Shown piece by piece: positions 1,200 through 60,283 of a stretch of 64,000 nucleotides of DNA. Numbering within the stretch: the stretch's first letter is position 1; each line of letters opens with the position of its first letter. Below the pieces are notes generated by a model, which ran no database searches, was not told the origin of the DNA, and was given only the letters and a program-made list of their open reading frames with translations. The position numbers were made by a program, and so were the translations under genes. The stretch covers positions 310,001-374,000 of the IMG/VR virus record IMGVR_UViG_3300027996_002186; one strand, written 5' to 3'.

Positions 1200-1706
1200 A
1201 TGCGTATTAAAGGGGTATATGAATTTTTCGATGATGATGATCTAAAATCACAATTCGAGATCCCACATCTAAGAGGTGAAATGGGTGACGAAATTAGTAA
1301 ATGGAAAACATTTGCTGAACCTTTAGGTGATGAAACGCCAAAATCCTTTCTAAATAAAATAGCATTTAAATTTCCCGTACTTAAAAGTTTTCACCAAGAT
1401 GTGAAAACAACTGATGATAATGTTGAAATATATTGCTTTTATGATTACTCACAAGAAGTTTGTGAAAATGGTAATGAATATTATGTGCAGTTAGTTATAT
1501 CATATGATATAAAAACCAAAGAATACTTCATAAACATTGTTATAAGAAACAAAGATGATTACGAAGACCAAAGTAAATGGAAGAGGTATGATGTTGAAAC
1601 TAAAGATATTACTCAAGCTTATGGATTAATCGAATCCTTTTTAACTAGTTGTATAAAACTAAATGTTATAACTCCTGAGCAAAAATCTGCTTTACTATCA
1701 AACTAA
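1200..1706 (+). CDS. Hypothetical protein (late-promoter operon)
   Basis: ORF; TATATATA at 1188-1195; overlaps the next start codon. Confidence 0.6.
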   Translation: MRIKGVYEFFDDDDLKSQFEIPHLRGEMGDEISKWKTFAEPLGDETPKSFLNKIAFKFPVLKSFHQDVKTTDDNVEIYCFYDYSQEVCENGNEYYVQLVISYDIKTKEYFINIVIRNKDDYEDQSKWKRYDVETKDITQAYGLIESFLTSCIKLNVITPEQKSALLSN

Positions 1707-2143
1707 TGAAACATATTAAAACATTCGAAAGTAAATGGAATTTACCTCAAAATAAGAGGTTAATAGTTCAGGGATCATTTAATAAATCTAACTTTACTCC
1801 AGCAACTGATAAAGTTAATTTATCACAAATATACCAATATATTATAATTGAAACCGAGGGAGGTAATATTATAACAATTGATAAGAGTGGTGTTCTTGAT
1901 ATTTGGATGAATGATGATTCTGGTGTTACTTCTGCTATCAGAAAAGCACTCGATAATATAAGTGACGAAACTTATGATGATATATATTTTGAGGATTTCG
2001 AAGATTTTAAGTCATATGAATATATAGTGAATTTGTTAGATTACAATCCTATAAACTTCCAAGAGATTGAAAATATTTTGATAGACCACGGTTATAGTGT
2101 TGATAACATATGGGGAGCTATTGATAATTTACCACAAAAATAA
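1706..2143 (+). CDS. Hypothetical protein with capsid-targeting-like leader
   Basis: Starts MKHIKTFES. Confidence 0.6.
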   Translation: MKHIKTFESKWNLPQNKRLIVQGSFNKSNFTPATDKVNLSQIYQYIIIETEGGNIITIDKSGVLDIWMNDDSGVTSAIRKALDNISDETYDDIYFEDFEDFKSYEYIVNLLDYNPINFQEIENILIDHGYSVDNIWGAIDNLPQK

Positions 2144-2149
2144 AATTTC

Positions 2150-2656
2150 ATGAAATACATAAAACCATATATTATTTTTGAATCAAAAGAATTATCTGAA
2201 TATTTTGATATTTTCATAAAAAGTGATATCATCGATGATGATAATTACGTAAATAGTTTACGTCAAAACAATCTTTGGTTTAGAGAAATAAGTCTTCAAG
2301 ATTTCATGGGGAGTAAATATAAAAATTTCAGACAAAAGAGCGATTCAGTAAGAAGAAAGGAATTTAAAAAGTATACCGTCTCATCTACACCATATTCTCG
2401 TGCTAGACAGAAAGAAAATTGTTTATGTGTGCAAATTGGATCATCCTTTAATATAGATGATGTTGAAATTTATATCAGAAGAATGTTAGATTATGCTAAT
2501 GAAAATGGATATTCTTATGAAGTTAGAAAAGAATTACAAGCTAGTCGAAAAAGTATAGATATAACAAATCTAATTAATCGAAGACTCAAACGTAAGAACA
2601 ACAGGGTTAATACACAGAAGATTCTATCTATTCAAATTTTATTCTATAAAGAATAA
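2150..2656 (+). CDS. Hypothetical protein with capsid-targeting-like leader
   Basis: Starts MKYIKPYIIFES. Confidence 0.6.
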   Translation: MKYIKPYIIFESKELSEYFDIFIKSDIIDDDNYVNSLRQNNLWFREISLQDFMGSKYKNFRQKSDSVRRKEFKKYTVSSTPYSRARQKENCLCVQIGSSFNIDDVEIYIRRMLDYANENGYSYEVRKELQASRKSIDITNLINRRLKRKNNRVNTQKILSIQILFYKE

Positions 2657-20523: not shown

Positions 20524-20544
20524 AAAATATTACGATAACTTATT

Positions 20545-22493: not shown

Positions 22494-22502
22494 TAAAAAA
22501 GA

Positions 22503-23348
22503 ATGGATTTAGGAGTAATAGGACAAGGATTTGTCGGAGGGGCTGTTAATGAGGGTATGAAAAACTTCTTTAATATGGTCACATTTGATTTAAATGGTAA
22601 TTGTACAGAACCATCATTATTCTCTTTGATAGAGAAGGTTGATGAGACATTTTTGTGTTTACCAACACCGATGAGAAAAACAGGTGAATGTGATTTATCG
22701 ATTGTTAGAAATTGTTTAAATGATGTATCAAGTATTGTAAAGTCATTGGGTAAAAAAGATTTCATTGTGGTAATAAAATCAACGATACCACCAGGAACAA
22801 CTGAGATGTTAAATAATGAATATGATAATATCAACATTGTTTTTAACCCAGAGTTTCTAACAGAAGCTAATGCTATTGAAGATTATAAAACCCAAAATAG
22901 AATTATAATTGGTGGTGATAGACCATATTCATCAAGAATAAAACAGGTTTTTGAAAAAGCTTTCCCGAAAGTTCCGATAATTAAAACATCATCAACAATT
23001 GCGGAAATGATTAAGTATGTTACTAATACATTTTTATCAACTAAAGTATCTTTTGCTAATGAGATGTATCAGATATGTGAAGGATTAGATATTGATTTTG
23101 ATAAAGTTATAGAATATACTAAATATGATGATAGATTGGGTAATACACATTGGTCTGTACCAGGACCAGATGGTGATTTTGGATATGGTGGACATTGTTT
23201 CCCAAAAGATATATCAGCACTTAAATATGTTTCTGATGAGATGGGTGTAAACACAACTATGTTATCAGCAACCATAGAAAAGAACAAAGAAGTTCGTAGT
23301 GATAAAGATTGGGAAAAACAAAAAGGAAGAGCAGTATCAGATGAGTAA
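22503..23348 (+). CDS. ugd: UDP-glucose/GDP-mannose dehydrogenase family (short form)
   Basis: GQGFVG, CLPTP, IKSTIPPG, FNPEFL, KVSFANE, GYGGHCFPKD. Confidence 0.8.
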   Translation: MDLGVIGQGFVGGAVNEGMKNFFNMVTFDLNGNCTEPSLFSLIEKVDETFLCLPTPMRKTGECDLSIVRNCLNDVSSIVKSLGKKDFIVVIKSTIPPGTTEMLNNEYDNINIVFNPEFLTEANAIEDYKTQNRIIIGGDRPYSSRIKQVFEKAFPKVPIIKTSSTIAEMIKYVTNTFLSTKVSFANEMYQICEGLDIDFDKVIEYTKYDDRLGNTHWSVPGPDGDFGYGGHCFPKDISALKYVSDEMGVNTTMLSATIEKNKEVRSDKDWEKQKGRAVSDE

Positions 23349-24198
23349 AGTATTAGTAACCGGTGGTTTAGGATTTGTAGGATCTAATTTGGTTGATAAG
23401 TTAGTTGAACAAGGTAATGAAGTAGATGTTATAGATAATTTATCATCTATATCATCATCAAAAGAATATTGTAATCCATTAGCTAATTATTACTATGAAG
23501 ATATTAACAATATAGATATTCTGAATAAACAATATGATAAGATATTTCACTTAGCGGCAGAAGCTAGAATACAACCTTCTTTCGAAGAACCAGTTAAATG
23601 GTTTGAATCAAATGCTTTAGGTACAATTAAAGTTATGGAGTTCGCTAGAAAAAATAATTGTGGGATAGTTGTTTACTCAACCACATCATCAAAAAATCAT
23701 GGTTCTGATTATATAAGTCCTTATACATATTCAAAAGTAGTTGGAGAAGGAGTACTCAAAACTTATTCAGAGTGTTATGATATAAATTGTGCGATGGCTA
23801 CTTTTTATAATGTTTATGGTTATAGGGAACCAGAAATGGGTGAATGGGCTACAGTTGTTGCTAAATTTTTAAGACAATATAAAGATAGCGAATTAATAAC
23901 GGTTGTTGGTGATGGTCAACAGAGTAGGGATTTTACACACGTTGATGATATATGTGATGGGTTGATATCAATTAGTGATGGTGAGTGGAAGGCTGATAAC
24001 TTTGATTTGGGTCGTGGAGAACCAATTAAAATACTTGATTTAGCTATGATGGTTTATGAGGGAGAGGAAGATAATATAAATCATATTCCTTTAAGAAAAA
24101 ATGAAGGACAACATACAGAATCTAATTGGAAAGAAACTTATGAAAAATTAGGATGGAGAGCTAAAAATAATTTAGCAAATTATATAAAAGAAAAATAA
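23341..24198 (+). CDS. NAD-dependent epimerase/dehydratase
   Basis: TGGLGFVG (likely start 23341), HLAA, YxxxK, NVYG, RDFTHV. Confidence 0.85.
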   Translation: MSKVLVTGGLGFVGSNLVDKLVEQGNEVDVIDNLSSISSSKEYCNPLANYYYEDINNIDILNKQYDKIFHLAAEARIQPSFEEPVKWFESNALGTIKVMEFARKNNCGIVVYSTTSSKNHGSDYISPYTYSKVVGEGVLKTYSECYDINCAMATFYNVYGYREPEMGEWATVVAKFLRQYKDSELITVVGDGQQSRDFTHVDDICDGLISISDGEWKADNFDLGRGEPIKILDLAMMVYEGEEDNINHIPLRKNEGQHTESNWKETYEKLGWRAKNNLANYIKEK

Positions 24199-24200
24199 TT

Positions 24201-24770
24201 ATGGCACACAAAGAACAAGATGATTACATCAATAGAATAAAGAATAAATTTCCGAATTTTTTCAAAAATAAAAAAGTATTAGGTATAGGAACATTTAATG
24301 TTTGTGGTACAGAAAATGAATACTTCAATGATTGTGATTACCAGGGGTTAGACCTTGGTCCGGGAGAGGGAGTTGATATAATTTGCCCGGCACAAGATTA
24401 TGACGCACCAGATGGAACATTTGATGTTATTATTTCTTGTGAATGTTGGGAACATAATCCTTATTACAAGGAAAGCATACAAAATGCAACTAGAATGTTA
24501 AAAAGTGGTGGGTTTTTTATATTCACTTGTGCTACTACCGGAAGACCAGTACATGGTGTTAAATATTTAGAAGAAGAATGTAAACTACAATATGATGATT
24601 GGAAAACAATGCCAAATGTGTCTAGGGATAATTGGGATAATGATTATTATAAAAATTTAACCGAAGGTGATATAAGAGAATGTGTTAATATAGATGATAC
24701 ATTTTCTTCTTATGAATTTGAAGTGGAAGAAAATCACTGTGATTTATTCTTCTGGGGTATAAAAAAATAA
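24201..24770 (+). CDS. Class I SAM methyltransferase (type 11-like)
   Basis: GLDLGPG.GVD, FDVIISCECWEH, MLKSGG. Confidence 0.7.
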   Translation: MAHKEQDDYINRIKNKFPNFFKNKKVLGIGTFNVCGTENEYFNDCDYQGLDLGPGEGVDIICPAQDYDAPDGTFDVIISCECWEHNPYYKESIQNATRMLKSGGFFIFTCATTGRPVHGVKYLEEECKLQYDDWKTMPNVSRDNWDNDYYKNLTEGDIRECVNIDDTFSSYEFEVEENHCDLFFWGIKK

Positions 24771-24777
24771 TAAGAAG

Positions 24778-25572
24778 ATGATAGTTAAAGAAGATGATAT
24801 AGTATTTGTTACTAATTCACTTTATACAAAGTGGATGGATTACCAATCAAAAATAATTAAAAGGCTTTTTCCAAATAGCGATCATATAATTGTTGATGGA
24901 TCAACACCAGAATTCAAGGCAAATTGGCCAAATTCTTGGTTTTATCATTTAGATGAAATAAAAAAATCAGATAAAAAATACTATATTCATATTGATGAAG
25001 ATTTCTTTTTAACTTCTAAAGAAGAGTTATTAAAAGCTGTCCAAAAAATGGAAGATGAAAATATAGACTTATTGGGGTGTCCGGATGGATATCAACACTT
25101 CAGAGGAGCAAATCCAGTTGCTATAAACACATTTTTTATGATTGGTAGAGTAGAAGATGTTAAGAGGTTGGATGTTGATTTAAAGTCAGCTAAATATTCT
25201 ATTGTTGTTTCTGAGGGCAATATCTATCATTGGTCTAATAACTTTGGGATAAAATTCGAAGAAATATTTAAAGATGATTTCAATTATAGGTGGGAAGATC
25301 AAGGTGGATCCAATTTCAAATATGACCATGAACCGTATTATACTTTCCTTTGGTCAATGAAAGAAATGGGTTGTAAGTTTGATTATTTATATCCATTTTT
25401 TGATGATAGATTTAAATCAACCAATCCTAGATTAGAAAAAGATTCAGATGATATTGGTATACATATGTGGTATACAAGAAATTGTGATAGTAATATGGAT
25501 GTCTGGGGATTACCAAATGTAGAGAGGTATAATTTGGTTGAAAAATATATTAATGAATTATATGAAATCTAA
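24778..25572 (+). CDS. Hypothetical GT-like protein ending the glycan island
   Basis: YIHIDEDFF (DxD-like); context. Confidence 0.45.
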   Translation: MIVKEDDIVFVTNSLYTKWMDYQSKIIKRLFPNSDHIIVDGSTPEFKANWPNSWFYHLDEIKKSDKKYYIHIDEDFFLTSKEELLKAVQKMEDENIDLLGCPDGYQHFRGANPVAINTFFMIGRVEDVKRLDVDLKSAKYSIVVSEGNIYHWSNNFGIKFEEIFKDDFNYRWEDQGGSNFKYDHEPYYTFLWSMKEMGCKFDYLYPFFDDRFKSTNPRLEKDSDDIGIHMWYTRNCDSNMDVWGLPNVERYNLVEKYINELYEI

Positions 25573-25759
25573 AATTAATAGTACTGAGATACAAGATATA
25601 GGTTCTGCTTATGGTATGGATGTAGAAGATGAATTAACTTCGATGTTATCGGAAGAGATAGCTAAATCAATTGATAGAGAAATATTTAAAAGTATGGGTA
25701 TAGAACTAGATAGATTTAAACGAAGAAAAACATCAATTAATAAGATATTTTCCTCTTAA
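25562..25759 (+). CDS. Mini-protein consisting of a major-capsid (gp23-like) helix fragment plus C-terminal tag
   Basis: QDIGSAYGMDVEDELTSMLSEEIAKSIDREI matches T4 gp23 QDLRAVHGMDADAELSGILATEIMLEINREV (recalled); ends RKTSINKIF. Confidence 0.65.
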   Translation: MKSKINSTEIQDIGSAYGMDVEDELTSMLSEEIAKSIDREIFKSMGIELDRFKRRKTSINKIFSS

Positions 25760-32763: not shown

Positions 32764-34046
32764 AATTTTAATAATATTTTTAATGTATAATCTTCTATAT
32801 CCCTATCATCATCGAATTGTCTATCTCCTCTACTCTTCCCGAAAATAACCTCACCGTGGTCCATTGTTGGTAATATTGTTGGTAAAACTTCATCTAACCC
32901 AGATTCTAATTTCCTTAAATTCATCGGTACTGATTTATACGGGTACATACCAACAATACCCTGATCAGTATTACCTATATCAATATAAACACAAGGAACA
33001 TACATAGTTAATATGTTTGCTGGGCTATAATTACGCAATTTTTGTAAATCATATTTATTTTTAACTATGATATCACTATTTCTAACAACCTCATAGTTCA
33101 TAATATCAAAGTTAACACATTGGAATTTTTTATCAGTTACATATTCCTCAGCTTCATCTTGTCTGATATAAACATCATTTTTATACCCACCTATTTTAAA
33201 TGTCGGTAACATAATTGATCTAATTATATCTCTCATTATCATATAAAACCTACTATCATCTTCTGTATCATAAACAGGCATTGTTCCATTATATTTATTC
33301 TTAATTGGTTCATCTTTTTTATAATAATCACCATAAGTTATAGCAGTTGTGACCCATTTACCCTTTTCAGTTGGTATTTCATCCCATATATCATATAGTC
33401 TATCATTAACATAATCTATATCAACTTTCTTCATAGAATTCCAAGTTTTAGTCAAATAATCTTCGATTATACCATACCATTTATCACCAATAAAATGGTT
33501 TGTCCATTTTTTAATATCAGACTCACTTAATTTATTATTCTTCATATTCTGATAATATAAATCATTATAAAAATCAAAAATGCTATATCTTTCTTCGTTG
33601 GATTCATTTAAACTCTCATCCATTGAATTTAATAAATCACCATAATCATCCTCTGAATAAATAAGTAATGATATACCTGGATAACTAAACTCTTCACCAC
33701 CATAAACATCGATGAATCTATCTAATGACATCCAATCTTGTTCCTTTGTAACTTCTACATCAACACCATATCCTTCATCAGCTCTCCAAACATAATCTTC
33801 TATTCTTTTAACAGCATCCTTTATATCATCCCATCTCCAAATCTCATCATTCTTTCTATAAATACCAACACATACCGATCTTATTGAGTCTGAAAACATA
33901 GGTGGTGTGTAATTAGTCTCATCTATAACTACACCAAATCCATCATCAGATAATTCTAATACAATATCCTCTAATTCTCTTTTTAGATTGGAGAATCTAG
34001 TAGAGTCTTCTGATTCAAATAGTTTATATTTCTTTAAGTATTTCAC
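32760..34046 (-). CDS. Putative virion internal protein
   Basis: MKYLKKYKLFES leader; DIVLELSDDG module; internal ESLNES linker. Confidence 0.6.
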   Translation of the reverse strand: MKYLKKYKLFESEDSTRFSNLKRELEDIVLELSDDGFGVVIDETNYTPPMFSDSIRSVCVGIYRKNDEIWRWDDIKDAVKRIEDYVWRADEGYGVDVEVTKEQDWMSLDRFIDVYGGEEFSYPGISLLIYSEDDYGDLLNSMDESLNESNEERYSIFDFYNDLYYQNMKNNKLSESDIKKWTNHFIGDKWYGIIEDYLTKTWNSMKKVDIDYVNDRLYDIWDEIPTEKGKWVTTAITYGDYYKKDEPIKNKYNGTMPVYDTEDDSRFYMIMRDIIRSIMLPTFKIGGYKNDVYIRQDEAEEYVTDKKFQCVNFDIMNYEVVRNSDIIVKNKYDLQKLRNYSPANILTMYVPCVYIDIGNTDQGIVGMYPYKSVPMNLRKLESGLDEVLPTILPTMDHGEVIFGKSRGDRQFDDDRDIEDYTLKILLKF

Positions 34047-35353
34047 TTTCTAATTACTTTAATTCTTTCTGTTTGATACTTCATTATATCAACATCTTGA
34101 TGCTCTGTTAATAAATCAACAATACCTTGATACATTTGTATTGTTATTTTACAATCTGTAATAGCATCGTGATAACCACTCATATTAATACCAAGTACTG
34201 GTCCTATTTTAGACATAGATGATGATATTAATCCATTATCTCTTGGTGAAGTACCAATAAAATCTATTTTCTCTTGAAAAGATGGGTCAGTCTCAGCTAA
34301 CTTCTGTAACAATGGTAAAAAGTATAATTGTATCAACATCTTAGTATCAAATACTTCATTCACAATCTTATTACCATATCTACCACTCAACATAGCCATA
34401 TCAAATGCCGCGTTTTGTGCAATTAATAAACAAGGTTCGTATTCACCTATGAATTTAAAGAAATCATTAACAACAGTTTCTTCGTCTTTGTACTTATATC
34501 CGCCACTACCATAATGGTTGAATCCTAAAACCCATTTAGTTCTATCTTCTGGTTCGTTATATTTAGACTTAGTATCATTTGTTAGTTTTATTTTCTCATC
34601 AAATTGTCCTAACTCCTTGAATTCGTTATTATCAAAATCACATTCAGTTACTAAACAAGATACTTGTGTTAATTGTTCTTTCTTTGGACCATTTAATCCT
34701 GTTGTTTCCACATCAACAAAAATCCAAGGCATATCAGTTTTAGAATCTAACCAAGAAAGTATTTCGGGTATTGATTTATACCACATCTTATTTTCATTTA
34801 TTGATTCTGAAACGTTATTAACTTCAAATTTGAATTCCTTACCATCAGCATGTGAATAAGTAACTTTATCAATGTTCTTAACATTATATTTATAATCGGG
34901 TTTTAGATATTTCTTACCCATACCTTTTTTAACATAAGCAATTGTTATATGTGGTTTATATTCTGGGTATTCATTTGAATTTGGTAATTCGGATAATTCA
35001 TCAAAAAGATTTTGTAATGATCCCTGTGGGTTAATATTGAATTTAACAACATCAAATTTATCATTCTCAAATATATCAACACCATCAACTTCTATATTTA
35101 TATCACCTTCAAAGGTATCGAATATAGACTTAACTTCCTCATTTGATACTTCCTTATGTAAACCATATAAAAGTGTAAGGTGTGGTCTCTTTTGTACACC
35201 ATACGTTGAATCACCGTCACTTTCATAGATGTCTTCTGGGTCTATCCAAGATGTTATTTCTTCCCAATTATTAACTGGTACGTCAACCATAACACAACCA
35301 TATTCATAGCCGTTTATTGATTCTTTAATAAATTCTTTATATTTCTTTAACAT
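34043..35353 (-). CDS. 2H phosphoesterase + DEDDh 3'-5' exonuclease fusion
   Basis: PHLTLLY and PHITIAY (two HxT motifs); FVDVETTG, AQNAAFD, HDAITD; MLKKYKEFIKES leader; ESINE linker between the domains. Confidence 0.8.
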   Translation of the reverse strand: MLKKYKEFIKESINGYEYGCVMVDVPVNNWEEITSWIDPEDIYESDGDSTYGVQKRPHLTLLYGLHKEVSNEEVKSIFDTFEGDINIEVDGVDIFENDKFDVVKFNINPQGSLQNLFDELSELPNSNEYPEYKPHITIAYVKKGMGKKYLKPDYKYNVKNIDKVTYSHADGKEFKFEVNNVSESINENKMWYKSIPEILSWLDSKTDMPWIFVDVETTGLNGPKKEQLTQVSCLVTECDFDNNEFKELGQFDEKIKLTNDTKSKYNEPEDRTKWVLGFNHYGSGGYKYKDEETVVNDFFKFIGEYEPCLLIAQNAAFDMAMLSGRYGNKIVNEVFDTKMLIQLYFLPLLQKLAETDPSFQEKIDFIGTSPRDNGLISSSMSKIGPVLGINMSGYHDAITDCKITIQMYQGIVDLLTEHQDVDIMKYQTERIKVIRK

Positions 35354-35923: not shown

Positions 35924-36193
35924 TTAGTTTAAGTTGTAGTTAAATATTGGTGTTTCATCTTCATAATCATCATCCTCAGCGTCTGTATCGAAATCAAATC
36001 CCATACTTACTAAGTAACTCATAACTTCATCAGTTAATTTCATGTTAGCATTTCTTTCTTCCATATAGTTGTCAAACATACCAACAGTAAATTGACCCCT
36101 TTCTTCTCTAAGTTTTATTAACTTAGGTAATAGGTCTTTAGCAATGTCTTCTGCTAAGTTTGAATGTGATTCAAATGTTTTTAAATGCTTCAT
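35924..36193 (-). CDS. Small protein with capsid-targeting-like leader
   Basis: MKHLKTFES. Confidence 0.6.
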   Translation of the reverse strand: MKHLKTFESHSNLAEDIAKDLLPKLIKLREERGQFTVGMFDNYMEERNANMKLTDEVMSYLVSMGFDFDTDAEDDDYEDETPIFNYNLN

Positions 36194-36620
36194 TGTCTAA
36201 CTCTGTTTTAATTTTCTCAAATGGTTTGTGGTATTGAGAGTCAATTACTTCAAAGAAGTTTTTCCAACCATCTCCCCTATAATTAAACAACAAGGTACTT
36301 TCTTTGTCTTTACTATTAAATATGTATCTTAACCTTGAACCTACTTTTTTCCGGGTGTAGAAATTAAGCAATGGAATTTCAGCCATTAATTGGTTTGAAC
36401 CCATACCCTTAATGAACTCAACTTCAATCGGTCCAGTAATATATTCTTCTTCTCTAGGTGGTGAATCTGGATGAAAAATCGTTGCTCCGTATCTTCGGTT
36501 TAGGTCATCGATATTAATTTTATAATCGAAATTAAGATTCTTCGTCAATATATTTGTTTCTACCTTTTCACCACCATAAGATGATTCGTTAAATTTTTCA
36601 AATTTATTTAAATATTTCAT
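36171..36620 (-). CDS. Protein with capsid-targeting-like leader
   Basis: MKYLNKFEKFNES. Confidence 0.6.
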   Translation of the reverse strand: MKYLNKFEKFNESSYGGEKVETNILTKNLNFDYKINIDDLNRRYGATIFHPDSPPREEEYITGPIEVEFIKGMGSNQLMAEIPLLNFYTRKKVGSRLRYIFNSKDKESTLLFNYRGDGWKNFFEVIDSQYHKPFEKIKTELDNEAFKNI

Positions 36621-36907
36621 TGTTTAATCTTTGTAACTTTTTTACCACCGAATGGTCCACTTAAATGTTTTAAGTTCCAAGATGGTATGAATTTCTTATT
36701 AGCTTTTTCATAATCTTCATAAGATTCAATGCCTGTATCAATAGGATTATGAATATATTGTATATTAGCACCTTCTTTATTCATATCAGAGATTCTATCA
36801 CCGATATCAGTACCTTTAGTTAACTTTCTTAACCTTTTAAGTTGGTCAACAGTGTGTTGCCTTGGTAGTGATTCGTTTATCTCACTAAATCTTTTTAAGT
36901 ATTTCAT
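36617..36907 (-). CDS. Protein with capsid-targeting-like leader
   Basis: MKYLKRFSEINES. Confidence 0.6.
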   Translation of the reverse strand: MKYLKRFSEINESLPRQHTVDQLKRLRKLTKGTDIGDRISDMNKEGANIQYIHNPIDTGIESYEDYEKANKKFIPSWNLKHLSGPFGGKKVTKIKQ

Positions 36908-37353
36908 AATTTGTTTATTTCATCTATTTTTACTTGTAGTGTATCTATTTTTGATTTTAGACCACTTGTTATATCTTCTTTAGATATTTTAGTGACAATC
37001 CAATCACCATAATAATCACCACCATCATAAACTCTATCATCTTTTGGATCCATAATTATTTTGAAAAACTCTCCTTCAAAAAACAAAAAATTTCCTAAAT
37101 CTGATTTATACATTTTTTGAATTCTGTAACCATCATCATTAATTATAAAGACCTTACCTTCTTCTTTAGCTCTTTTCATACAATATTCAGCTAAACTTTC
37201 TAAGTTAATTCCTGGTGTTCTTGGATTTGACCAAACCTTTTTAGATATTTCTTTATATTCATCTTCTCTTGAAGGAACATTACCATATTCAGATGCTTCA
37301 CCATTATCAATATAATCTTTAACATTTTCGTTAAATTTCTTTAAATGTTTCAT
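36904..37353 (-). CDS. Protein with capsid-targeting-like leader
   Basis: MKHLKKFNEN; AATATATA at 37374-37381. Confidence 0.6.
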   Translation of the reverse strand: MKHLKKFNENVKDYIDNGEASEYGNVPSREDEYKEISKKVWSNPRTPGINLESLAEYCMKRAKEEGKVFIINDDGYRIQKMYKSDLGNFLFFEGEFFKIIMDPKDDRVYDGGDYYGDWIVTKISKEDITSGLKSKIDTLQVKIDEINKL

Positions 37354-41131: not shown

Positions 41132-41548
41132 CTACGGTTTTATTATGATATCTTTCATTAGTTTACCCCATTTGAATTGTATCATACCATAACATAATAT
41201 TTTACCATCATATTCATAATCAGGTTCTTTAGCTAAATCATATCTTATATCTGAGTATTTATCTTGTATTCTATTAATACAAGTTTCGATTTCTTTATAT
41301 ATTTCTAAATTTTTTTCGGTGTTTTTTATAAAGTCTGATACTTTACCATGTGCCGTACCGATACTAAATCCAGTTAATTTTTTATTTAATTTGTGTAAAG
41401 TGTTTAGGTCAAAATTAACATAACACTCTTTACCACCACTATATTCAAAATCAGATCCATCATCTATAAAATCAGCAAAAACTAATTTTATATAATCTGA
41501 TACTTCATCATTATCAACAGATTCGTTATATTTATTTAGATGTTTCAT
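41132..41548 (-). CDS. Protein with capsid-targeting-like leader (start reassigned)
   Basis: MKHLNKYNES at 41548; AATATATA at 41553-41560. Confidence 0.6.
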   Translation of the reverse strand: MKHLNKYNESVDNDEVSDYIKLVFADFIDDGSDFEYSGGKECYVNFDLNTLHKLNKKLTGFSIGTAHGKVSDFIKNTEKNLEIYKEIETCINRIQDKYSDIRYDLAKEPDYEYDGKILCYGMIQFKWGKLMKDIIIKP

Positions 41549-42712: not shown

Positions 42713-42898
42713 TTATCCATTAAATACTTTATTAATTTTATTTTTCCTATTACTTTGTTTAATATCGGTCCAAATATCTGAACGAAAAGTTAATGATTTC
42801 CACTCACCACTTTGAAAAATATAGTTATTTGATTCAATCGTGTTATAATAAATATCTCCTTCTATTGGATTCTCTGGTACTGTTGATAATACCAACAT
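42713..42898 (-). CDS. Mini-protein with fibre-like repeat and C-terminal tag
   Basis: PENPIEGDIYYNT..YIFQSGEW; ends RKNKINKVF. Confidence 0.5.
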   Translation of the reverse strand: MLVLSTVPENPIEGDIYYNTIESNNYIFQSGEWKSLTFRSDIWTDIKQSNRKNKINKVFNG

Positions 42899-43989
42899 TA
42901 AGCTTCAAAATTCTTAGATCTCTTTAGTTTTTCAAGTATATACTTTTCATCCATTGAAATCTTCGTTGGTATTCTAATATTAACAACTACGAATAAATCA
43001 CCCAATCCTAAATTAACATCAGGTATACCTTTTCCAGAAACTCTTATAGTTCTTCCGTGAGGTGTTCCTTCATCGATAGTAATTGGTAATTCACCGTGTG
43101 GTGTTTTAACTTTAAGATGTGCTCCTAAGATAGCATCTATAACGGATACTTCTTTCTCAACAATTAAATTATTACTATCTCTTTTGAAATAGAATTCTCT
43201 GAGTTCATCTATCATAATATGTAAATCCCCAGGAACACCATCTCTTACATGATTACCATAACTTCTCATATTAAGTTGCATACCGGCAGAAACACCAGCC
43301 GGGATATCTACCTCAACAACTTCATCTTTAACACTTGTACCACTTCCGTGACAAACACCACATTTATTACTGATTTGTTTACCACCGCCTTGACAATCTG
43401 GACAAGTTGCTTGTTGTCTAACTTGTCCGAATGGTGTCTGTTGTAAAACCACTCTACTTCCTCTACCACCACAAGGAATACAATCTTTAACACCAGATCC
43501 TCCTTTACCAGAACAACTATTACAAGAATCCTGTCTCTTATATTTTATCTTCTTAGTAGTACCATTTAAGACATCCTCAATCGACAATGTAACTTTTATT
43601 CTTAAATCAGATCCTCTATTTTTCCTTCTTTGTTTTGGTCCGCCGAATTGTCCGCCGCTTCCGAAAATATCACCAAATTGACTAAAAATATCTTCCATAT
43701 TAAATCCATGACCATATTGACCACCGTCACCTCCTCCACCATTGGAGAATGGATTACCTTGTCCAAATGGACTACCACCTGGTCCATATCTATCATAACT
43801 TTCTCTCTTTTCTTTAGATGAGAGTGTATCATATGCTTCTGCTGCTTCTTTGAATTTAGATTCAGACTCAGCATTTCCTGGGTTTTTATCTGGGTGATGT
43901 TTCATCGCCATTTTGCGATAAGCTCTCTTAATCTGATCCTCAGATGCCGTCTTATCTACTCCTAGTGTGTTGTAATAATCTTTTGCCAT
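42898..43989 (-). CDS. dnaJ: DnaJ co-chaperone
   Basis: J-domain HPD, G/F-rich region, four CxxCxGxG zinc repeats. Confidence 0.95.
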
Positions 43990-47062: not shown

Positions 47063-47599
47063 ATGAATATAGTAATAATGGGACCACCCGGTGCGGGTAA
47101 AGGAACTATCTGTGAAAAACTAACTAAAGATTATAATTATAAATTGATTTCTGCTGGAGATTTACTCAGAGAAGAGAAATCGTCTGGTAGTGAATTAGGT
47201 AATGAAATTGCCTCTATCATAGACAAAGGCAATTTAGTCCCTGATGGGATGATAACCACTATAATATTAAGTGAGTTGGATGATAATGAAGATGATTCAT
47301 TTTTAGTTGATGGTTACCCAAGAACAATAAGACAAGGAAATAGCCTAGATAATATGATGGATGTTTCAAAGGTTATTTGGTTAAATGTTAGTGAAGAAAC
47401 AACTATTAAAAGAAATTTAAATAGAGGTAAAACTTCAAATAGACCAGATGATGCAAATGAAGAAGTTATAAAAGAAAGAATAAAAAATTACAATGAAACA
47501 TCCGCACCCTTAAAAGATTTCTATAAGGAGAGGATAATTGAAATTGATGGAGAAGGAACACCTGATGAAGTTTATGAATTAATTAAAAATAAGATTTAA
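47063..47599 (+). CDS. adk: Adenylate kinase (short LID)
   Basis: GPPGAGKG, GDLLR, LVPD, DGYPR, RPDD. Confidence 0.92.
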   Translation: MNIVIMGPPGAGKGTICEKLTKDYNYKLISAGDLLREEKSSGSELGNEIASIIDKGNLVPDGMITTIILSELDDNEDDSFLVDGYPRTIRQGNSLDNMMDVSKVIWLNVSEETTIKRNLNRGKTSNRPDDANEEVIKERIKNYNETSAPLKDFYKERIIEIDGEGTPDEVYELIKNKI

Positions 47600-47606
47600 A
47601 TAATAT

Positions 47607-48086
47607 ATGAGTTTTTTGGAAATGACTGTTCCAAGTCCGGGTGAATCTATTAGTGAAGTTGAAATTTCCACTTGGTTAGTATCAGATGGTGATTATGTTA
47701 AGAAAGACCAATCAATCGCAGAAGTAGATTCAGACAAAGCAACTTTAGAATTACCAGCAGAAGAATCTGGTATTATTAAGATAAAGGTTGAAGAAGGTCA
47801 GTCGGTAAGAATTGGGGAGGTGGTTTGTTTGATAGACTTATCAACATCCGAAAAAAATAAAACAGTCGTAAAGAAGAAAGAAGAAGGTAGATTAGAAGTC
47901 GGAAGACAATTAAATATAGAATATAAAATAGGAGATATTGTTAGATGGTGTTGGTCAGAACAACACAGAAGCACTTACTTCATTATCAGTATAGATAATA
48001 AGGGAGTTATGTTGAAACAGAATTTTGGAATGGGACAAACGCTAACAGGTAAAATACACATATCAGAAATTGAATTGGACTATTAA
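47607..48086 (+). CDS. Lipoyl-domain (SucB/E2-like) fused to an unrelated beta domain
   Basis: VPSPGESISEVEI..W...GD.V.KDQ.IAEVDSDKATLELPAE with lipoyl-Lys DKA; no E2 catalytic domain. Confidence 0.8.
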   Translation: MSFLEMTVPSPGESISEVEISTWLVSDGDYVKKDQSIAEVDSDKATLELPAEESGIIKIKVEEGQSVRIGEVVCLIDLSTSEKNKTVVKKKEEGRLEVGRQLNIEYKIGDIVRWCWSEQHRSTYFIISIDNKGVMLKQNFGMGQTLTGKIHISEIELDY

Positions 48087-48128
48087 AAGAACAAACCAGA
48101 TTATATCTGGTTTTTTTATATATAAAAA

Positions 48129-49394
48129 ATGAAGAAATTGTCAAAATATTTAGAATTTATAAATGAAAGCTCAGATTACAAGGGTTATTCAATTCCTTCT
48201 TATAAGGAAGCTGTTGAGTTATGCTCAAAAAATGCTGCTTTTTATGAATCTAAAATGATTGTTGATGGATTTAATGTATCTGTATTCAATTACAGACTAA
48301 CAAGTTATAAGGATTTTGCTAACCCTCTTGATCACAAACCAGAATTAAAAGGTTATGAAATGAGGGGGTTAACATTCATTTTTAATGAAGATGGTACATT
48401 ATTCAATAGATATGTGTTGCTTGAAAAATTCTTTAATATAAATCAAGTTCCGGAATCAATGTATTCCATTGTTAAGGATTATAAAATAAAATATGTTAAT
48501 AATAAAGAAGATGGTTCAATAGCGACATTCGTGAAATTACCAAATGGTAAAATTGTTGGTAAATCTAAAATGGGGTTTGATAATGACCAATCAAATGGTA
48601 TTAATAGAATATATCAAAATGATACTGAAATAAAGACATTAGTTAACTGGTGTTTAGATAATGATATAATACCTATATTTGAATATGTCGCTCCTCATAA
48701 TAGAATTGTATTGAGATATACACAAGAGGAATTGATACTTTTAAGATTAAGAGATAATAAAACCGGTAAACATATCGATATACAAGACCACTTAGATAAG
48801 ATTGGTTCGACTAAGATTGCTCCATTCGAAGATGATCACCAAGGTAACTTGGATAAGTTAATTGAATTGGTTGCTAATCAAGTTGATAAAGAGGGATGTG
48901 TTGTACAAGCTGAGGATAGTGAAGGTAGAGATTTCTTCTTCAAATTAAAGACTCCTTGGTATTGTGAGCGTCATGGTTTATTAACTAATGATATTTACAG
49001 AGAACACATTATAATAGGATATATCTTAGATGATAAGATTGATGATATTCTTAGTCAAATACCAGAGGATGAAGTTGAAGCACATACAAGAATAAATAAG
49101 ATTATTGTAATAGTTAAGAGAGCTATAGATGATAAGATGGAAGATATCAAGAAGTCATATCAGGTATTTCTTGATATGGGGGAAGACAGAAAAGAGTATG
49201 CTCTTACACATATGAAGGCAGAACCTAACTTCTGTTATGTTATGAATTTAGCAAACGGTAAAGATCTTTATGATATAGCTAAAGAGCACGTAAGAGATAA
49301 GACTAAGAGGTTGATGATATCAAGAGATTGGTTACAGAAAATAGACCCAACACTTTTCTTCCAAGACCCGGAAGAAGATGAAGAGAATAATTAA
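48129..49394 (+). CDS. rnl1: T4 Rnl1-family RNA ligase
   Basis: LEKFFN, KEDGS (motif I), EY..P.NRIV, EGCV, FKLKTPWY; leader MKKLSKYLEFINES. Confidence 0.85.
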   Translation: MKKLSKYLEFINESSDYKGYSIPSYKEAVELCSKNAAFYESKMIVDGFNVSVFNYRLTSYKDFANPLDHKPELKGYEMRGLTFIFNEDGTLFNRYVLLEKFFNINQVPESMYSIVKDYKIKYVNNKEDGSIATFVKLPNGKIVGKSKMGFDNDQSNGINRIYQNDTEIKTLVNWCLDNDIIPIFEYVAPHNRIVLRYTQEELILLRLRDNKTGKHIDIQDHLDKIGSTKIAPFEDDHQGNLDKLIELVANQVDKEGCVVQAEDSEGRDFFFKLKTPWYCERHGLLTNDIYREHIIIGYILDDKIDDILSQIPEDEVEAHTRINKIIVIVKRAIDDKMEDIKKSYQVFLDMGEDRKEYALTHMKAEPNFCYVMNLANGKDLYDIAKEHVRDKTKRLMISRDWLQKIDPTLFFQDPEEDEENN

Positions 49395-49432
49395 AGAGAG
49401 TTTTTAACTCTCTTTTTTTATATATACTATTA

Positions 49433-50116
49433 ATGGAATATCTACAAACATATAAACTATTTGAAAGTGATTCTTCAATGCCGGAATTATCCGAACAAGA
49501 ATTAAAAGATGATGAACTTTATAGTTATATAGGTGATATATGTCAAGAATTAAAAGATGATGGGTTAGAAGTTAGAATAAAAATAAGTGATTGTTCTAAA
49601 GTAGGTAATATGTTATGTGATGATGTGGTTTCTATCTGGACAAACGTTCCATCATCAATTGATATATCTAATAGGATTAATGATATTATTGAATATAGCG
49701 AGATAAAGGAAACCTATGATAGATTGATTGAGTATTTTGCATCAAAGGGGTATGATAATTATGAATTGAAAAGATTTAATTTTGAAGATGGTTCTATTTA
49801 TTTGGATTTTGATGGTGATGAGAATAAAAAATCAGAATCATTTAAGATAGAATTTTACAAATCAGTTAATCATATAATAGAATCTAAAACGACATCTAAA
49901 TTAAAATTTAACAAACAATCTAGAAAGAAAGGTGCTAAGACTGATGTTTATAACGTAGTTAAGAATGGTACTACAATAGGTCAAGTTAAATGGTATAGTA
50001 GATTACGTGGTTATGGTTTCTTGCCACCTACTGGCGATGAAGCAGAAGTAAAGGAATTTGTTAAAGAAGTTTCTAGACTACGTAGAGAAGAAATGAAAAA
50101 GAACAAAAAGAAGTAA
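49433..50116 (+). CDS. Putative virion internal protein
   Basis: MEYLQTYKLFES leader; DICQELKDDG module; TATATATA at 49419-49426. Confidence 0.55.
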   Translation: MEYLQTYKLFESDSSMPELSEQELKDDELYSYIGDICQELKDDGLEVRIKISDCSKVGNMLCDDVVSIWTNVPSSIDISNRINDIIEYSEIKETYDRLIEYFASKGYDNYELKRFNFEDGSIYLDFDGDENKKSESFKIEFYKSVNHIIESKTTSKLKFNKQSRKKGAKTDVYNVVKNGTTIGQVKWYSRLRGYGFLPPTGDEAEVKEFVKEVSRLRREEMKKNKKK

Positions 50117-50460: not shown

Positions 50461-52341
50461 ATGAGTAAAGAAACTACAATAATTGGTATTGACTTAGGAA
50501 CAACAAATAGTTGTTTAGCAGTTGTTCAAGGTGGAGAACCTATTGTTATTACTAATTCAGAAGGTAAGAGAACTACCCCATCAGTTGTTGGATTCACAGA
50601 CAATGATAGAAAGATTGGTGATCCAGCCAAAAGACAAGCGGTTACTAATCCTGAGAAAACTGTTTATTCAATTAAACGTTTCATAGGTAAAGACTTTTCT
50701 GTTTGTAAAAGTGAAGTATCAAAGGTACCTTACAAGTTAGTAAAAACGGGGTCAAATGTCCCAGGTGTTAAAATAGATGATAGAGTCTATACACCACAAG
50801 AAATTTCAGCAATGATTCTACAAAAAATGAAGAAAACGGCTGAAGAGTTTTTAGGTCACGAGGTGGAAAGAGCAGTTATTACTGTTCCAGCTTATTTTGG
50901 TGATGCTGAAAGAACAGCAACTATCGAAGCAGGAGAAATTGCTGGTTTGAAAGTTGAAAGAATTATAAACGAACCAACTGCTGCAGCTTTAGCTTACGGG
51001 TTAGACAAAAAGAATACAGATTCTAAGATTCTTGTATTTGATTGTGGTGGTGGTACACATGATGTTTCAGTTTTAGAAATTGGTGATGGTGTTTTTGAAG
51101 TTAAATCTACGGATGGTGATACTCATTTAGGTGGTGATGATTTCGATAATGCGATTATTGACTGGATGGTAAAAGAATTCAAATCAGAATATGGTATGGA
51201 TTTAACAAAAGATCCAATGGCTCTTCAAAGGTTGAAGGAAGCTGGTGAAAAAGCAAAAATCGAGTTATCAACATCAACACAAACTGAAATAAATCTACCT
51301 TACATCACAGCTAAAGATGGTACACCGTTACACTTTGTTAAGAAGTTATCAAACTCTAAGTTTGAACAAATGACTTCTAAGTTAGTGGATAGAACTATCG
51401 CTTGTGCGAAAAGTGCTCTCAAAAGCGCAGGGTTGAAACCAGCAGACATTGACGAGGTTATACTTGTTGGTGGTTCTACTAGAATCCCAGCTATTCAAAA
51501 AGCTGTTGAAGATTATATTGGTAAAACACCTAATAAATCAGTAAACCCAGATGAAGTTGTTGCTCTTGGAGCGGCTATTCAAGGAGCTGTTTTAGGAGGA
51601 GGAATTACAGATGTTTTACTTCTTGATGTAACACCCCTTTCACTAGGTATTGAAACAATGGGGTCAGTAATGACTAGATTGATTGATGCTAATACAACGA
51701 TTCCTACTCGTAAGGCGGAAACGTTTTCAACGGCATCTGATAATCAACCATCTGTTGAGATTCATGTTTTACAAGGTGAAAGACCAATGGCAAAAGATAA
51801 TCGTGACTTAGGTAGATTCCATTTAGATGGTATAATGCCCGCTCCAAGAGGTATTCCTCAAGTTGAAGTTACATTAGATATCGATGCTAATGGAATCCTT
51901 TCTGTTTCTGCTAAAGATAAGGCTACTGGTAAAGAGAATAAAATTCGAATTGAAGGTGGTTCTCAATTATCTAAAGAAGAAATTGAAAGAATGAAGTCTG
52001 AAGCTGAGGCTAACGCTGAAACAGATAAAATCGAAAGAGATAAAGTTGATAAACTTAATGAAGTAGATAACTTAATGTTTCAGACAAATAAGCAGATGAA
52101 GGAATTCTCTGAACAATTAACGGAGGAGGATGTTAATTCTCTAAAGTCTGATCTTGAAGAGGTTCAAAAAGCTCATTCTGAACAAGACATTGAAAAGATG
52201 GATGAAACATCCAAGAAATTGAGTGAAACTTGGTCAGTAATCAGTACTAGGCTATACCAAGAAACAAATGAGGCCGAATCGACAGAAGAGGTCGTAGATG
52301 AAGGTGAAGTGGAAGACACTCCATTTGAAGAGGTAGATTAA
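50461..52341 (+). CDS. dnaK: DnaK (Hsp70)
   Basis: [32 protein letters not shown]-like linker DVLLLDV, GIETMG. Confidence 0.97.
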
Positions 52342-59571: not shown

Positions 59572-59737
59572 TGAATATATTTTTAATTTTATACATCCTC
59601 TCAGATCTTTTATCAAGCCCATTAATCATGTCACTAACAACCTGACTAGTAACTATGTAATTACCAACTCCTCTTCTCGAATATTTGTTTATTTTAGAAG
59701 CAGTTTTTAATATTTTATCAAATAAATTTTTAGACAA
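59564..59737 (-). CDS. Mini-protein: major-capsid (gp23-like) fragment + C-terminal tag (TTG start; not in track)
   Basis: Manual translation LSKNLFDKILKTASKINKYSRRGVGNYIVTSQVVSDMINGLDKRSERMYKIKNIFNE*; matches T4 gp23 LLFQIDKEAVEIARQTGRGEGNFIIASRNVVNVL (recalled). Confidence 0.65.
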   Translation of the reverse strand: MSKNLFDKILKTASKINKYSRRGVGNYIVTSQVVSDMINGLDKRSERMYKIKNIFNE

Positions 59738-59743
59738 TGATAT

Positions 59744-60283
59744 TTATTTCTTTTTGTCTATTTGCATTATATTAAGATCCATAGGTGTTTTTCTACCAAA
59801 AATAGCAACGGATACTGTAATCCTATCACCATTAATAGCTTCAATGGTACCAATCATTGTATCAAATGGGCCATCTGTTATTGAGACATCCTCACCAACA
59901 ATAAACATATCACTAATATCCATTTCTTTTTGTTCTTCTTGTTGACCTATCATTCTTTTTATCTCTTTTTCTTTCATAGGATTTATACTACCATCTCTTT
60001 CTGTTAAAAATCCGGTTGCTCCGTCACAACCACTTAGAAAGTATTTCAACTCACCAATAGAATTGGCTTCAACAAAAATATAACCAGGAAACATTATTTT
60101 ATCTCTGACAACTTTTTTACCATTTTTAAGATTCACAACAGTTTCCATTGGCACAAGTACTTGACTAACAGCCTTTTGTAATTCCGGTTCTTTTTGTATT
60201 CTCTCACAAACTTTTCTTTCTTTATTACCCTGTGTTCTGATAATATACCAATTCATTGTTTTTTCTTTTGTTCTAGTTCTCAT
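59744..60283 (-). CDS. nusG: Transcription elongation factor NusG
   Basis: NGN domain WYIIRT..E.KV, FPGYIFVE; KOW GE.V.I.DGPF, IFGRKTP. Confidence 0.9.
   Translation of the reverse strand: MRTRTKEKTMNWYIIRTQGNKERKVCERIQKEPELQKAVSQVLVPMETVVNLKNGKKVVRDKIMFPGYIFVEANSIGELKYFLSGCDGATGFLTERDGSINPMKEKEIKRMIGQQEEQKEMDISDMFIVGEDVSITDGPFDTMIGTIEAINGDRITVSVAIFGRKTPMDLNIMQIDKKK

Follow-up and report, generated by a model that had tools for sequence, protein, structure and literature searches.

The locus holds an ORF of 421 aa, starting MKKLSKYLEFINES, that encodes a complete Rnl1-family RNA ligase. It lies in the analysed window, a stretch of 64,000 nucleotides from an uncultured phage with a genome of at least 492 kb, related to the 634-642 kb Mahaphages. 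Ahead of the ligase fold the protein has a 13-residue leader, MKKLSKYLEFINE, followed by Ser14 and a linker predicted to be disordered, and a TATATATA box is found 4 nt upstream of the ATG, directly following a terminator hairpin (Table 1). The first-pass annotation had described an Rnl1 core preceded by a capsid-targeting-like leader and such a box, and this observation is confirmed.

The ligase gene and its cassette

The family assignment rests on a match to Pfam RNA_lig_T4_1 (PF09511) at 2.7e-21 (76.9 bits against a cut-off of 28.3), to PHROG 562 at 1.7e-55, and to the solved structures of T4 Rnl1 (gp63, RnlA; PDB 2C5U, 5TT6) at about 5e-24, with which the protein shares about 28-31% identity. 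T4 residue 8 aligns with residue 27 of the present protein, so that about 19 N-terminal residues are extra. All nucleotidyltransferase motif residues are invariant in the 41 homologues that were aligned, with K126 in KEDG aligning with the T4 motif I lysine. The match to the Rnl1-specific C-terminal domain, PF20819, is weak and below its cut-off (2.6e-4, 21.7 bits against 27), whereas AF2 gives a confident all-helical domain in this region. The protein is the only RNA ligase in the 492 kb.

Table 1. Features at and around the ligase gene (coordinates are those of the window)
Position	Strand	Feature	Observations
48093..48113	+	Intrinsic terminator hairpin of the upstream gene	9-pair stem, its T-run running straight into the box; four terminator-like sites in 47600-49600, against 0.5 expected
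48117..48124	+	TATATATA box, promoter-like element of the kind found before the head and tail genes	Geometry implies a leaderless or nearly leaderless mRNA
48129..49394	+	Rnl1-family RNA ligase ORF	Complete
48129..48167	+	Leader M1-E13, predicted capsid-targeting propeptide with predicted cleavage after Glu13, before Ser14	AF2 predicts a helix at 2-12, pLDDT below 50, detached from the core
48168..48185	+	Hypervariable linker, S14 to about G19	Column entropy 2.1-2.75 bits, variable length; predicted disordered, pLDDT below 50 for residues 1-20
48186..48962	+	Rnl1 adenylyltransferase domain	Motif I K126 (48504-48506), motif III E185, motif IV E255 (E255-G256), motif V K272 and K274
49002..49343	+	Predicted all-helical C-terminal domain, putative counterpart of the T4 Rnl1 C-domain	AF2 helices at 292-405, pLDDT mostly 83-95 over residues 321-410
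49344..49394	+	Conserved acidic C-terminal tail (…LFFQDPEE…N) and stop codon	L409, F410, F411 and P414 conserved; specific to this clade; absent from T4 Rnl1 and from the leaderless LR756504 ligase, which ends differently
49393..49415	+	Terminator of the ligase gene	Followed by a second TATATATA box (49419-49426)
49433..50116	+	Next cassette, 227-aa protein	Leader MEYLQTYKLFE, then S; weak cold-shock-like C-terminus
34043..35353	-	2H phosphoesterase (LigT/Acb1-like) combined with a DEDD 3'-5' exonuclease	Second enzyme with the long-form leader, here MLKKYKEFIKE, then S
35924..37353	-	Cluster of four small ORFs (89, 149, 96 and 149 aa)	Each starts with the leader; arrangement resembles a T4 internal-protein locus
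41132..41548	-	138-aa ORF	Leader MKHLNKYNE, then S
1706..2656	+	Two adjacent leader ORFs (145 and 168 aa)	

The box, referred to below as the TATATA box, precedes 23/24 of the leader genes that have their own upstream gap, against 141/335 other genes (p = 9e-8), while the host-type TAnnTTTG box precedes none of them (0/24 against 38/335). It also precedes the portal, protease-scaffold, MCP, sheath, TerL and gp4 genes, and a gp55-like late sigma factor is encoded. It has to be noted, however, that the same box is found before non-structural genes such as RNR-beta and DnaJ, so that it does not prove late-only expression. T4 gp63 additionally has a late role in tail-fibre attachment, which could by itself explain late expression, and T4-family RnlA is annotated as "RNA ligase and tail fiber attachment catalyst". 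A reading in which the N-terminal extension and expression with the virion genes serve this second activity, rather than RNA repair by an injected enzyme, is nevertheless considered very unlikely, as T4 gp63 performs it without any leader, the same leader sits on about 47 unrelated proteins, and all catalytic ligase residues are conserved.

The short distance between the box and the ATG also raises the question of whether the start is wrongly annotated, or whether the N-terminal conservation reflects an RNA-level or translation-initiation signal in an A/T-rich genome without Shine-Dalgarno sites, the more so as box-to-ATG distances peak at 0-9 nt genome-wide. This appears to be only a remote possibility, since the next Met is residue 43, inside the fold, the conserved residues use alternative codons, including both AGY and TCN for Ser, and the motif consists of spaced hydrophobic and acidic residues rather than of a nucleotide pattern. 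The leader does not resemble a Sec or lipoprotein signal peptide either: it is amphipathic and acidic, without a hydrophobic stretch, and true signal-like N-termini found elsewhere in relatives look different.

Conservation and distribution of the leader

The T4 capsid targeting sequence (CTS), as read from the T4 genome, is MKTYQEFIAE, followed by A. In T4, residues 4 and 7 target the protein, residues 8 and 10 direct processing, and Asp at position 10 blocks cleavage (PMC9026906). The ligase leader carries Y-x-E-F-I-x-E, in which Y7, F10, I11 and E13 match Y4, F7, I8 and E10 of the T4 CTS at the same spacing, and it also has L4 and Y7 at the T4 targeting positions. The comparison of leader presence across Rnl1 homologues, which had been proposed beforehand as a check, showed that the leader is conserved in 118 ligase homologues and absent from T4-type and more distant Rnl1. 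Within the 118, Y is found in 118/118, F in 117/118, the next position is I/L/V, and E is found in 118/118 and is never Asp, while S or N follows in 114/118 and the linker varies freely. Synonymous codons vary at the conserved positions, so selection acts on the peptide. The leaderless distant Rnl1 genes (here labelled L050-L052) have host-type boxes. A word search gave 1,554 Rnl1 relatives in total.

The leader is far more frequent than expected by chance. In the 492-kb genome 48 of 649 ORFs start with it, against 6.0 +/- 2.4 (maximum 13) when the N-termini are shuffled, and in the 313-kb record it starts 6.6% of ORFs but follows only 0.7% of internal Met residues. One protein matching a broader pattern ([YF]..[FY][ILV].E[SN]), at position 169176 of the combined genome, was set aside as a false positive because its N-terminus was read, without a family scan, as that of a thymidylate synthase, ThyA. 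The carriers have different domains and include the 2H phosphoesterase-exonuclease, a lysozyme and a methyltransferase, although Pfam scans of 20 or so of the other leader proteins gave no domain for most of them. The portal, MCP, sheath, TerL and the gp3- and gp4-like proteins do not carry a leader. The LR745206 ortholog of the 2H phosphoesterase-exonuclease keeps the leader, and in LR756502 the two domains are separate genes, each with its own leader. No common C-terminal tag was found on the leader proteins. They are acidic on average (-4.9 net charge per 100 aa), and the ligase itself, at 421 aa, has a net charge of -16. The small, basic, DNA-associated character of the T4 internal proteins (IPI-III class) is thus not shared, and as cargo the ligase resembles Alt rather than an internal protein.

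This distribution could also suggest that the leader is merely a passenger of cassette shuffling, a mobile 5' module of terminator, TATATA box and leader that spreads by recombination between genes and has no role for the ligase itself. The ligase and the next gene are both such cassettes, and in LR756502 the gene upstream of Rnl1 starts with nearly the same leader as the ligase, which suggests local copying. We regard this reading as very unlikely, however, given the near-complete conservation of Y, F and E over 118 ligase clusters at 66-99% identity, with synonymous codon turnover and a freely varying linker, and given that the leader persists where the promoter differs, as in the gene labelled L038.

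The head module of the same phage

A search for the gp21 protease family in the window's own record found nothing, but that record proved to be a fragment, which makes the CheckV estimate of 91% completeness misleading. The head module lies on an overlapping contig of the same phage, with 99.9-100% nucleotide identity, and comprises a T4-type portal (PF07230 at 2e-56), a Gp23-like capsid protein (2.7e-26) and a gp21-like prohead protease fused to a scaffold in a protein of 713 aa, with the protease domain at residues 1 to about 170. The protease matches the PHROG 207 head maturation protease at 1.6e-30 and its protease domain shows 29% identity to T4 gp21 over a 112-residue alignment, with gp21 His85 and Ser140 aligned; the Pfam S77 match alone is below its cut-off (18.8 bits against 27), and a sequence search of the domain against solved structures gave only chance-level hits.

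The scaffold part holds 10 or more 14-residue repeats carrying the motif of the leader, of which 8 match the strict octamer Y.E[FY][ILV].E[SN]. That octamer occurs 12 times in 152,147 residues, 8 times in the scaffold repeats, 4 times at protein N-termini and nowhere else. The predicted capsid propeptide ends …EYAEFHSINE, followed by NAY, and an 84-aa paralogue joins a leader to the NAY… segment exactly at that junction. A complex prediction in which the leader (ligase residues 1-32) was folded with the scaffold repeat region (residues 250-460) returned a score of 0.00 without controls, which is evidence neither for nor against binding.

Proposed packaging and injection of the ligase

The interpretation that we favour, with moderate confidence, is that the ligase is made as a precursor with a T4-type CTS. 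The analysis itself establishes that the ligase core is intact, that the leader is a portable 13-residue N-terminal module with the motif Y-x-E-F-I-x-E followed by Ser or Asn, and that the same phage has a T4-type portal, a gp23-type capsid protein and a gp21-type prohead protease fused to a scaffold whose repeats carry this motif. What follows is inferred from sequence alone for this uncultured phage, including late production, cleavage, packaging, ejection and RNA sealing on 5'-P/3'-OH ends. In this model, the leader, which looks like one scaffold repeat, docks the ligase onto the scaffold core during head assembly, following which the prohead protease would cut after Glu13, as it is predicted to cut the scaffold repeats ([LI]-A-E before N) and the capsid propeptide (I-N-E before N), a specificity inferred from T4. 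This would leave mature ligase starting at Ser14, with the N-terminus SSDYK…, inside the DNA-filled head, to be ejected with the genome together with the 2H phosphoesterase-exonuclease, the lysozyme, the methyltransferase and dozens of small proteins, and to be available at once in the new cell to seal broken RNA, most plausibly tRNA cut by host defence nucleases. It has to be noted that many short-form leaders (…T-F-E before S) lack the I/L at P3 that T4 gp21 prefers.

An alternative is that the leader is a functional N-terminal tag, but not one for head packaging, and that it localizes proteins to an assembly site, recruits a chaperone, or marks proteins for timed cleavage or inactivation by the prohead protease without encapsidation. 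Its conservation and portability show function but do not say which function, the tagged proteins are acidic, unlike the T4 internal proteins, and about 7% of ORFs would be a very large cargo list. We consider this alternative unlikely, as the leader matches the experimentally defined determinants of the T4 CTS and the scaffold repeat unit, a leader joins an MCP-like segment exactly at the predicted MCP propeptide junction, and the phage has a T4-type head module.

The first-pass annotation had further stated that T4 Rnl1 has no such leader and is not a head-packaged enzyme, and had proposed that injecting the ligase with the genome would allow tRNA repair before phage translation starts. This interpretation is only partly supported. 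The resemblance to a capsid-targeting leader is real and better founded than could be known from the sequence alone, T4 Rnl1 does lack the leader, and T4 Rnl1 is not known to be packaged in the head. The rationale of tRNA repair before translation is, however, incomplete: Rnl1 needs 5'-P and 3'-OH ends, and the phage's polynucleotide-kinase-like and HAD-phosphatase-like proteins, needed to heal HEPN-type tRNA breaks, have no leader, so that an injected ligase alone could seal only nicks that already have ligatable ends. A yeast/plant-type repair pathway is not supported either, as no Tpt1/KptA (PF01885) was found in either contig.

[quoted passage not shown] In the present phage the residue after the predicted cut is Ser or Asn rather than Ala, a short form (MK[HY]LKxFE before S) and a long form exist, about 48 carriers are present rather than a handful, these are acidic on average and include sizeable enzymes, and the scaffold itself is built of repeats of the motif and fused to the protease. 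T4 Alt, an ADP-ribosyltransferase, is likewise an enzyme rather than a small DNA-binding protein; it is loaded into the head through a propeptide removed by the prohead protease and acts in the next host before phage gene expression, but it modifies host RNA polymerase, whereas the target and timing of the ligase are inferred. T4 Rnl1 shares the family, the motifs, a helical C-terminal domain (predicted here) and the presumed role in repairing cleaved tRNA, but works with Pnkp, which is made after infection. Ejection proteins of giant phages (SPN3US and phiKZ propeptide-bearing head proteins; N4 virion RNA polymerase; polyvalent proteins, PMC5512222) similarly involve many head-internal proteins, some of them enzymes, delivered with the DNA, and in SPN3US and phiKZ N-terminal propeptides are removed by a related prohead protease; most of the described SPN3US propeptides are longer than 100 residues, with the 20-residue gp45 propeptide the exception (PMC5694885), the cleavage motifs differ, and no RNA ligase is reported among these proteins in the papers that could be searched.

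The CTS of T4 is the textbook way in which a phage loads proteins into its head, but it is known for only a few small proteins and Alt, whereas here the same code appears in the largest known phages, on dozens of proteins and on recognizable enzymes. If confirmed, this would provide a simple sequence rule (M-K-x-hydrophobic-x-x-aromatic … [I/L]-x-E followed by S/N) for predicting virion cargo in uncultured huge phages from sequence alone, as well as a new family of packaging tags for T4-like delivery vehicles, and it would suggest that a CTS works by imitating a scaffold repeat. RNA repair, and probably degradation of host signalling molecules, could then start at the moment of injection, before any phage gene is read. 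A broader reading, which remains tentative and which we hold slightly less likely than not, is that in the Mahaphage-related huge phages a T4-type targeting peptide mimicking one scaffold repeat loads a large, fast-evolving set of proteins, about 7% of the ORFs, into the capsid, so that the phage would enter each cell with a ready-made repair and counter-defence proteome, the ligase being the first RNA-repair enzyme known to travel in a virion.

The ligase gene and the phage that carries it

The ORF reported in the first-pass annotation as an RNA ligase 1 with a capsid-targeting-like leader is real, so that this observation holds: it encodes a protein of 421 aa which starts with MKKLSKYLEFINES. 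The protein matches the Pfam family RNA_lig_T4_1 at 2.7e-21, above the curated cut-off, as well as PHROG 562, “RNA ligase and tail fiber protein attachment catalyst”, at 1.7e-55 and the solved structures of T4 Rnl1 at about 5e-24, whereas the C-domain of T4 Rnl1 is matched only weakly (21.7 bits against a cut-off of 27). K126 in N-K-E-D-G aligns with the motif I lysine of the T4 enzyme, and E185, E255-G256, K272 and K274 (motifs III, IV and V) are invariant in 41 aligned homologues. Residue 8 of the T4 protein aligns with residue 27 here, so that about 19 residues at the N-terminus have no counterpart in T4. At the other end of the protein, a conserved acidic tail (L-F-F-Q-D-P-E-E…) is found on the leader-bearing ligases but not on the leaderless homologue of LR756504, and could represent a second clade-specific element, since T4 Alt is processed at both ends.

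The gene is a self-contained unit, in which a terminator hairpin runs into the box TATATATA, the ATG follows 4 nt later, and a second terminator and a second box precede the next gene. Its surroundings include a lipoyl/biotinyl-attachment domain (PF00364, 6.8e-20) fused to an unknown C-terminal half, which lies next to an adenylate kinase, with DnaK and, as judged by its N-terminus only, DnaJ nearby. Further away, a long run of same-strand ORFs has N-termini that look like Rossmann-type sugar-nucleotide enzymes and glycosyl- or methyltransferases, and may be a glycan synthesis cluster, although this was judged by eye only.

The window is part of a 312.7-kb IMG/VR record (G000) with 29% GC, the closest public relatives of which are LR745206 (634 kb; ligase 84% identical), LR756502 (642 kb; 69%) and LR756504 (636 kb; 38%). 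These are genomes of Al-Shayeb et al. 2020, who placed them in the Mahaphage clade and predicted that they replicate in Bacteroidetes (PMC7162821). A second IMG/VR contig of 483 kb (G001) overlaps the record at 99.9-100% nucleotide identity, and together the two give at least 492,099 bp of one phage. The record, although rated 91% complete by CheckV, is therefore a fragment, and lacks its head genes only for that reason. A search with ARAGORN found only four tRNA genes (Cys, Met, Gln, Glu) in the combined 492 kb, and none in the window.

Coordinates of the features described in the text (window positions unless G000, the window's own record, or G001, the overlapping contig, is named)
Feature	Position	Strand
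Polynucleotide-kinase-like protein	229-714	
Run of ORFs, possible glycan synthesis cluster	~8185-25572	
Small ORF copying a piece of the gp23-like capsid protein	25553-25759	+
Small ORF copying a piece of the gp23-like capsid protein	~59618-59809	-
Small ORFs copying pieces of the gp23-like capsid protein	G000 257723-257944 and 293136-293294	
Small ORF copying a piece of the gp23-like capsid protein	G001 41158-41412	
2H phosphoesterase (LigT/Acb1-like) and DEDD exonuclease fusion	34043-35353	-
Cluster of small leader ORFs	35924-37353	
DnaJ (N-terminus only)	42898-43989	
Adenylate kinase	47063-47599	
Lipoyl/biotinyl-attachment domain protein	47607-48086	+
Terminator hairpin before the ligase gene	48093-48113	
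Box before the ligase gene	48117-48124	
Interval from TATATA box to ATG, ligase gene	48117-48131	
Rnl1-family RNA ligase	48129-49394	+
Acidic C-terminal tail of the ligase	49344-49391	
Second terminator	49393-49415	
Interval from TATATA box to ATG, next gene	49419-49435	
DnaK	50461-52341	
TAnnTTTG boxes (GTATATTTGTTA-like)	upstream of 819, 25799 and 46563	
T4-lysozyme-family domain protein	G001 3483-4313	
Prohead protease-scaffold fusion	G001 135766-137907 (the same interval as L058:11767-13908)	

A T4-like head module and the leader motif

The overlapping contig carries a T4-type portal (PF07230, 2e-56), a gp23-type major capsid protein (PF07068, 2.7e-26) and, between them, a 713-aa protein whose first 340 or so residues match PHROG 207, “head maturation protease”, at 1.6e-30. 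It has to be noted that the Pfam S77 match of this protein is weak (18.8 bits, below the cut-off); however, a BLASTP comparison with T4 gp21 gives 29% identity over a 112-residue alignment, in which gp21 His85 (G-E-L-N-H-P) and Ser140 (V-S-S-R-G) are aligned to G-E-F-D-H-P and V-S-S-R-A. Homologues of T4 terminase, sheath, gp3 and gp4 and of the gp55 late sigma factor are also present.

Behind the protease domain lie 10 or more tandem 14-residue repeats of the type N-I-A-Y-S-E-Y-I-A-E-N-L-D-K, followed by a long acidic region, an arrangement that is also found in LR745206 and LR756504. Each repeat contains [L/I]-A-E followed by N or S, which fits the [L/I]-x-E rule of T4 gp21, as illustrated by the sites read from T4 DNA, namely I-A-E|A in IPII/III, L-T-E|A in gp23 and L-R-E|S in gp24. 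With each repeat ending in a predicted protease site, the protein would cut itself into 14-mers. The N-terminus of the protease has L-I-V-E|N and L-I-R-E|S at the place where T4 gp21 has its L-I-E-9 site (PMC9026906), and the N-terminal region of the capsid protein aligns with the T4 gp23 propeptide and ends …E-Y-A-E-F-H-S-I-N-E|N-A-Y. Several small ORFs copy separate pieces of the gp23-like capsid protein, i.e. the propeptide plus N-arm, a middle motif, or the C-terminal strand, and some of these have Lys-rich tails and one has a leader. Small ORFs with similar Gp23-piece matches also occur in LR745206 and LR756502, and they could be capsid-associated decoys or internal proteins.

As read from the T4 genome, IPII and IPIII start with MKTYQEFIAE|A and IPI with MKTFKEF…. 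In T4 the first 10 residues suffice for encapsidation, with residues 4 and 7 carrying the targeting and residues 8 and 10 the processing, and Asp at position 10 blocks cleavage (PMC9026906). The ligase leader has hydrophobic residues at positions 4 and 7 (L, Y) and, in addition, Y7-L-E-F10-I11-N-E13|S14, which is the T4 heptad Y-x-E-F-I-x-E with 5 of 7 residues identical. In 118 ligase homologues of 66-99% identity, from contigs of up to 642 kb, Y is present in 118/118 and F in 117/118, the next residue is I/L/V, E is present in 118/118 and is never D, and the residue after E is S or N in 114/118, whereas the 4-12 residues that follow vary in sequence and length. At the conserved positions the DNA uses TAT and TAC, TTT and TTC, GAA and GAG, and both AGY and TCN for Ser, and the constraint is therefore on the peptide. 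AlphaFold2 predicts a short helix (residues 2-12) and a linker ahead of the ligase fold, with pLDDT below 50 for residues 1-20.

Genome-wide distribution and promoter context of the leader

In the combined 492 kb, 48 of 649 ORFs start with the leader, against 6.0 +/- 2.4 (maximum 13) in shuffles, and in the 313-kb record it starts 6.6% of ORFs but follows only 0.7% of internal Met residues. The leader count rests on a regular expression, which misses variants such as MKLTKYLEFVQS and in its broader form admitted one false positive, read as ThyA. The strict octamer Y.E[FY][ILV].E[SN] occurs 8 times in the scaffold, 4 times at N-termini and nowhere else in 152,147 residues. Carriers with recognizable domains are the ligase, a 2H phosphoesterase (LigT/Acb1-like) fused to a DEDD exonuclease, a SAM methyltransferase, and a T4-lysozyme-family protein, the domain of which sits behind a long leader-like N-terminal region and which could be an ejected cell-wall hydrolase rather than, or as well as, an endolysin. 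A further carrier is an NFACT-R protein next to the capsid gene, whose MIKKY… N-terminus was not caught by the counting pattern, so that it is not among the 48. Most carriers are small ORFs without matches, often in clusters.

The portal, capsid protein, protease, sheath, terminase and gp3- and gp4-like proteins have no leader, and it is therefore not a general feature of virion or late proteins. Three further observations tie the leader to a tag and to a cleavage junction. In LR756502 the 2H and exonuclease domains are separate genes, each of which has its own leader; an 84-aa paralogue of the N-arm of the capsid protein carries a leader joined exactly at the predicted I-N-E|N-A-Y junction of the capsid protein; and LR756504 has the same scaffold repeats but few leaders (about 3 in 108 ORFs), with none on its ligase.

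Among genes with at least 30 nt of their own upstream sequence, 23/24 leader genes have a TATATA-type box, against 141/335 of the others (p = 9e-8). None of the 24 has a second type of box, TAnnTTTG, against 38/335 of the others; this box resembles the Bacteroidota -7 promoter element, which fits the Bacteroidetes host predicted for Mahaphages. The TATATA box also precedes the sheath, terminase, gp4, portal, protease-scaffold and capsid genes. Three leaderless distant Rnl1 genes (L050-L052) have TAnnTTTG boxes instead, although one leader-bearing ligase (L038) also has only that type. As the TATATA box precedes RNR-beta and DnaJ as well, it cannot be called strictly late. The distances from this box to the ATG are bimodal, with peaks at 0-9 nt (108 genes) and at 15-30 nt (about 110), which suggests that many genes, the ligase included, give leaderless or nearly leaderless mRNAs.

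Proposed route of the ligase into the head and the new host

What the sequences establish is an intact Rnl1, a conserved detachable leader with the determinants of the T4 CTS, a T4-type head module, and a scaffold made of leader-like repeats. Everything concerning cleavage, packaging and injection, as well as the sealing activity of the enzyme, is inferred from sequence, and a structure prediction of the complex gave no answer. In the inferred model, the leader docks the precursor on the scaffold core and the protease cuts after Glu13, following which the mature ligase stays in the head and is ejected with the DNA, as T4 does with its internal proteins, with Alt and with CTS fusions (PMC9026906, PMC3012670, PMC5694885).

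The inferred mechanism is that of the T4 CTS, and what is new is the cargo, which is an RNA-repair enzyme, the scale of about 7% of ORFs, the S/N residue after the predicted cut, the acidic character of the cargo, and the identity between the leader and the scaffold repeat. The papers searched on the CTS, giant-phage head proteolysis, polyvalent proteins and jumbo-phage RNA repair mention no packaged RNA ligase and no such leader in huge phages, although the literature searched was incomplete and this is not proof of novelty.

The proposal of the first-pass annotation that injection of the ligase with the genome would allow tRNA repair before phage translation starts is only partly supported and needs qualification. 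Rnl1 seals 5'-P/3'-OH ends, whereas the polynucleotide-kinase-like protein and the HAD phosphatase-like protein have no leader and no Tpt1 was found. An injected ligase alone could therefore seal only nicks left by nucleases that produce ligatable ends, or it would have to wait for the healing enzymes. The leader-tagged 2H enzyme, a candidate for injection, might open cyclic phosphates and act in RNA end healing, but it could equally be an Acb1-like degrader of signaling nucleotides, of the cyclic or 2'-5' kind (PMC5512222). The ligase is the only RNA ligase in the 492 kb and, if the box is late-only, the carried-in enzyme would be the only ligase present early in infection.
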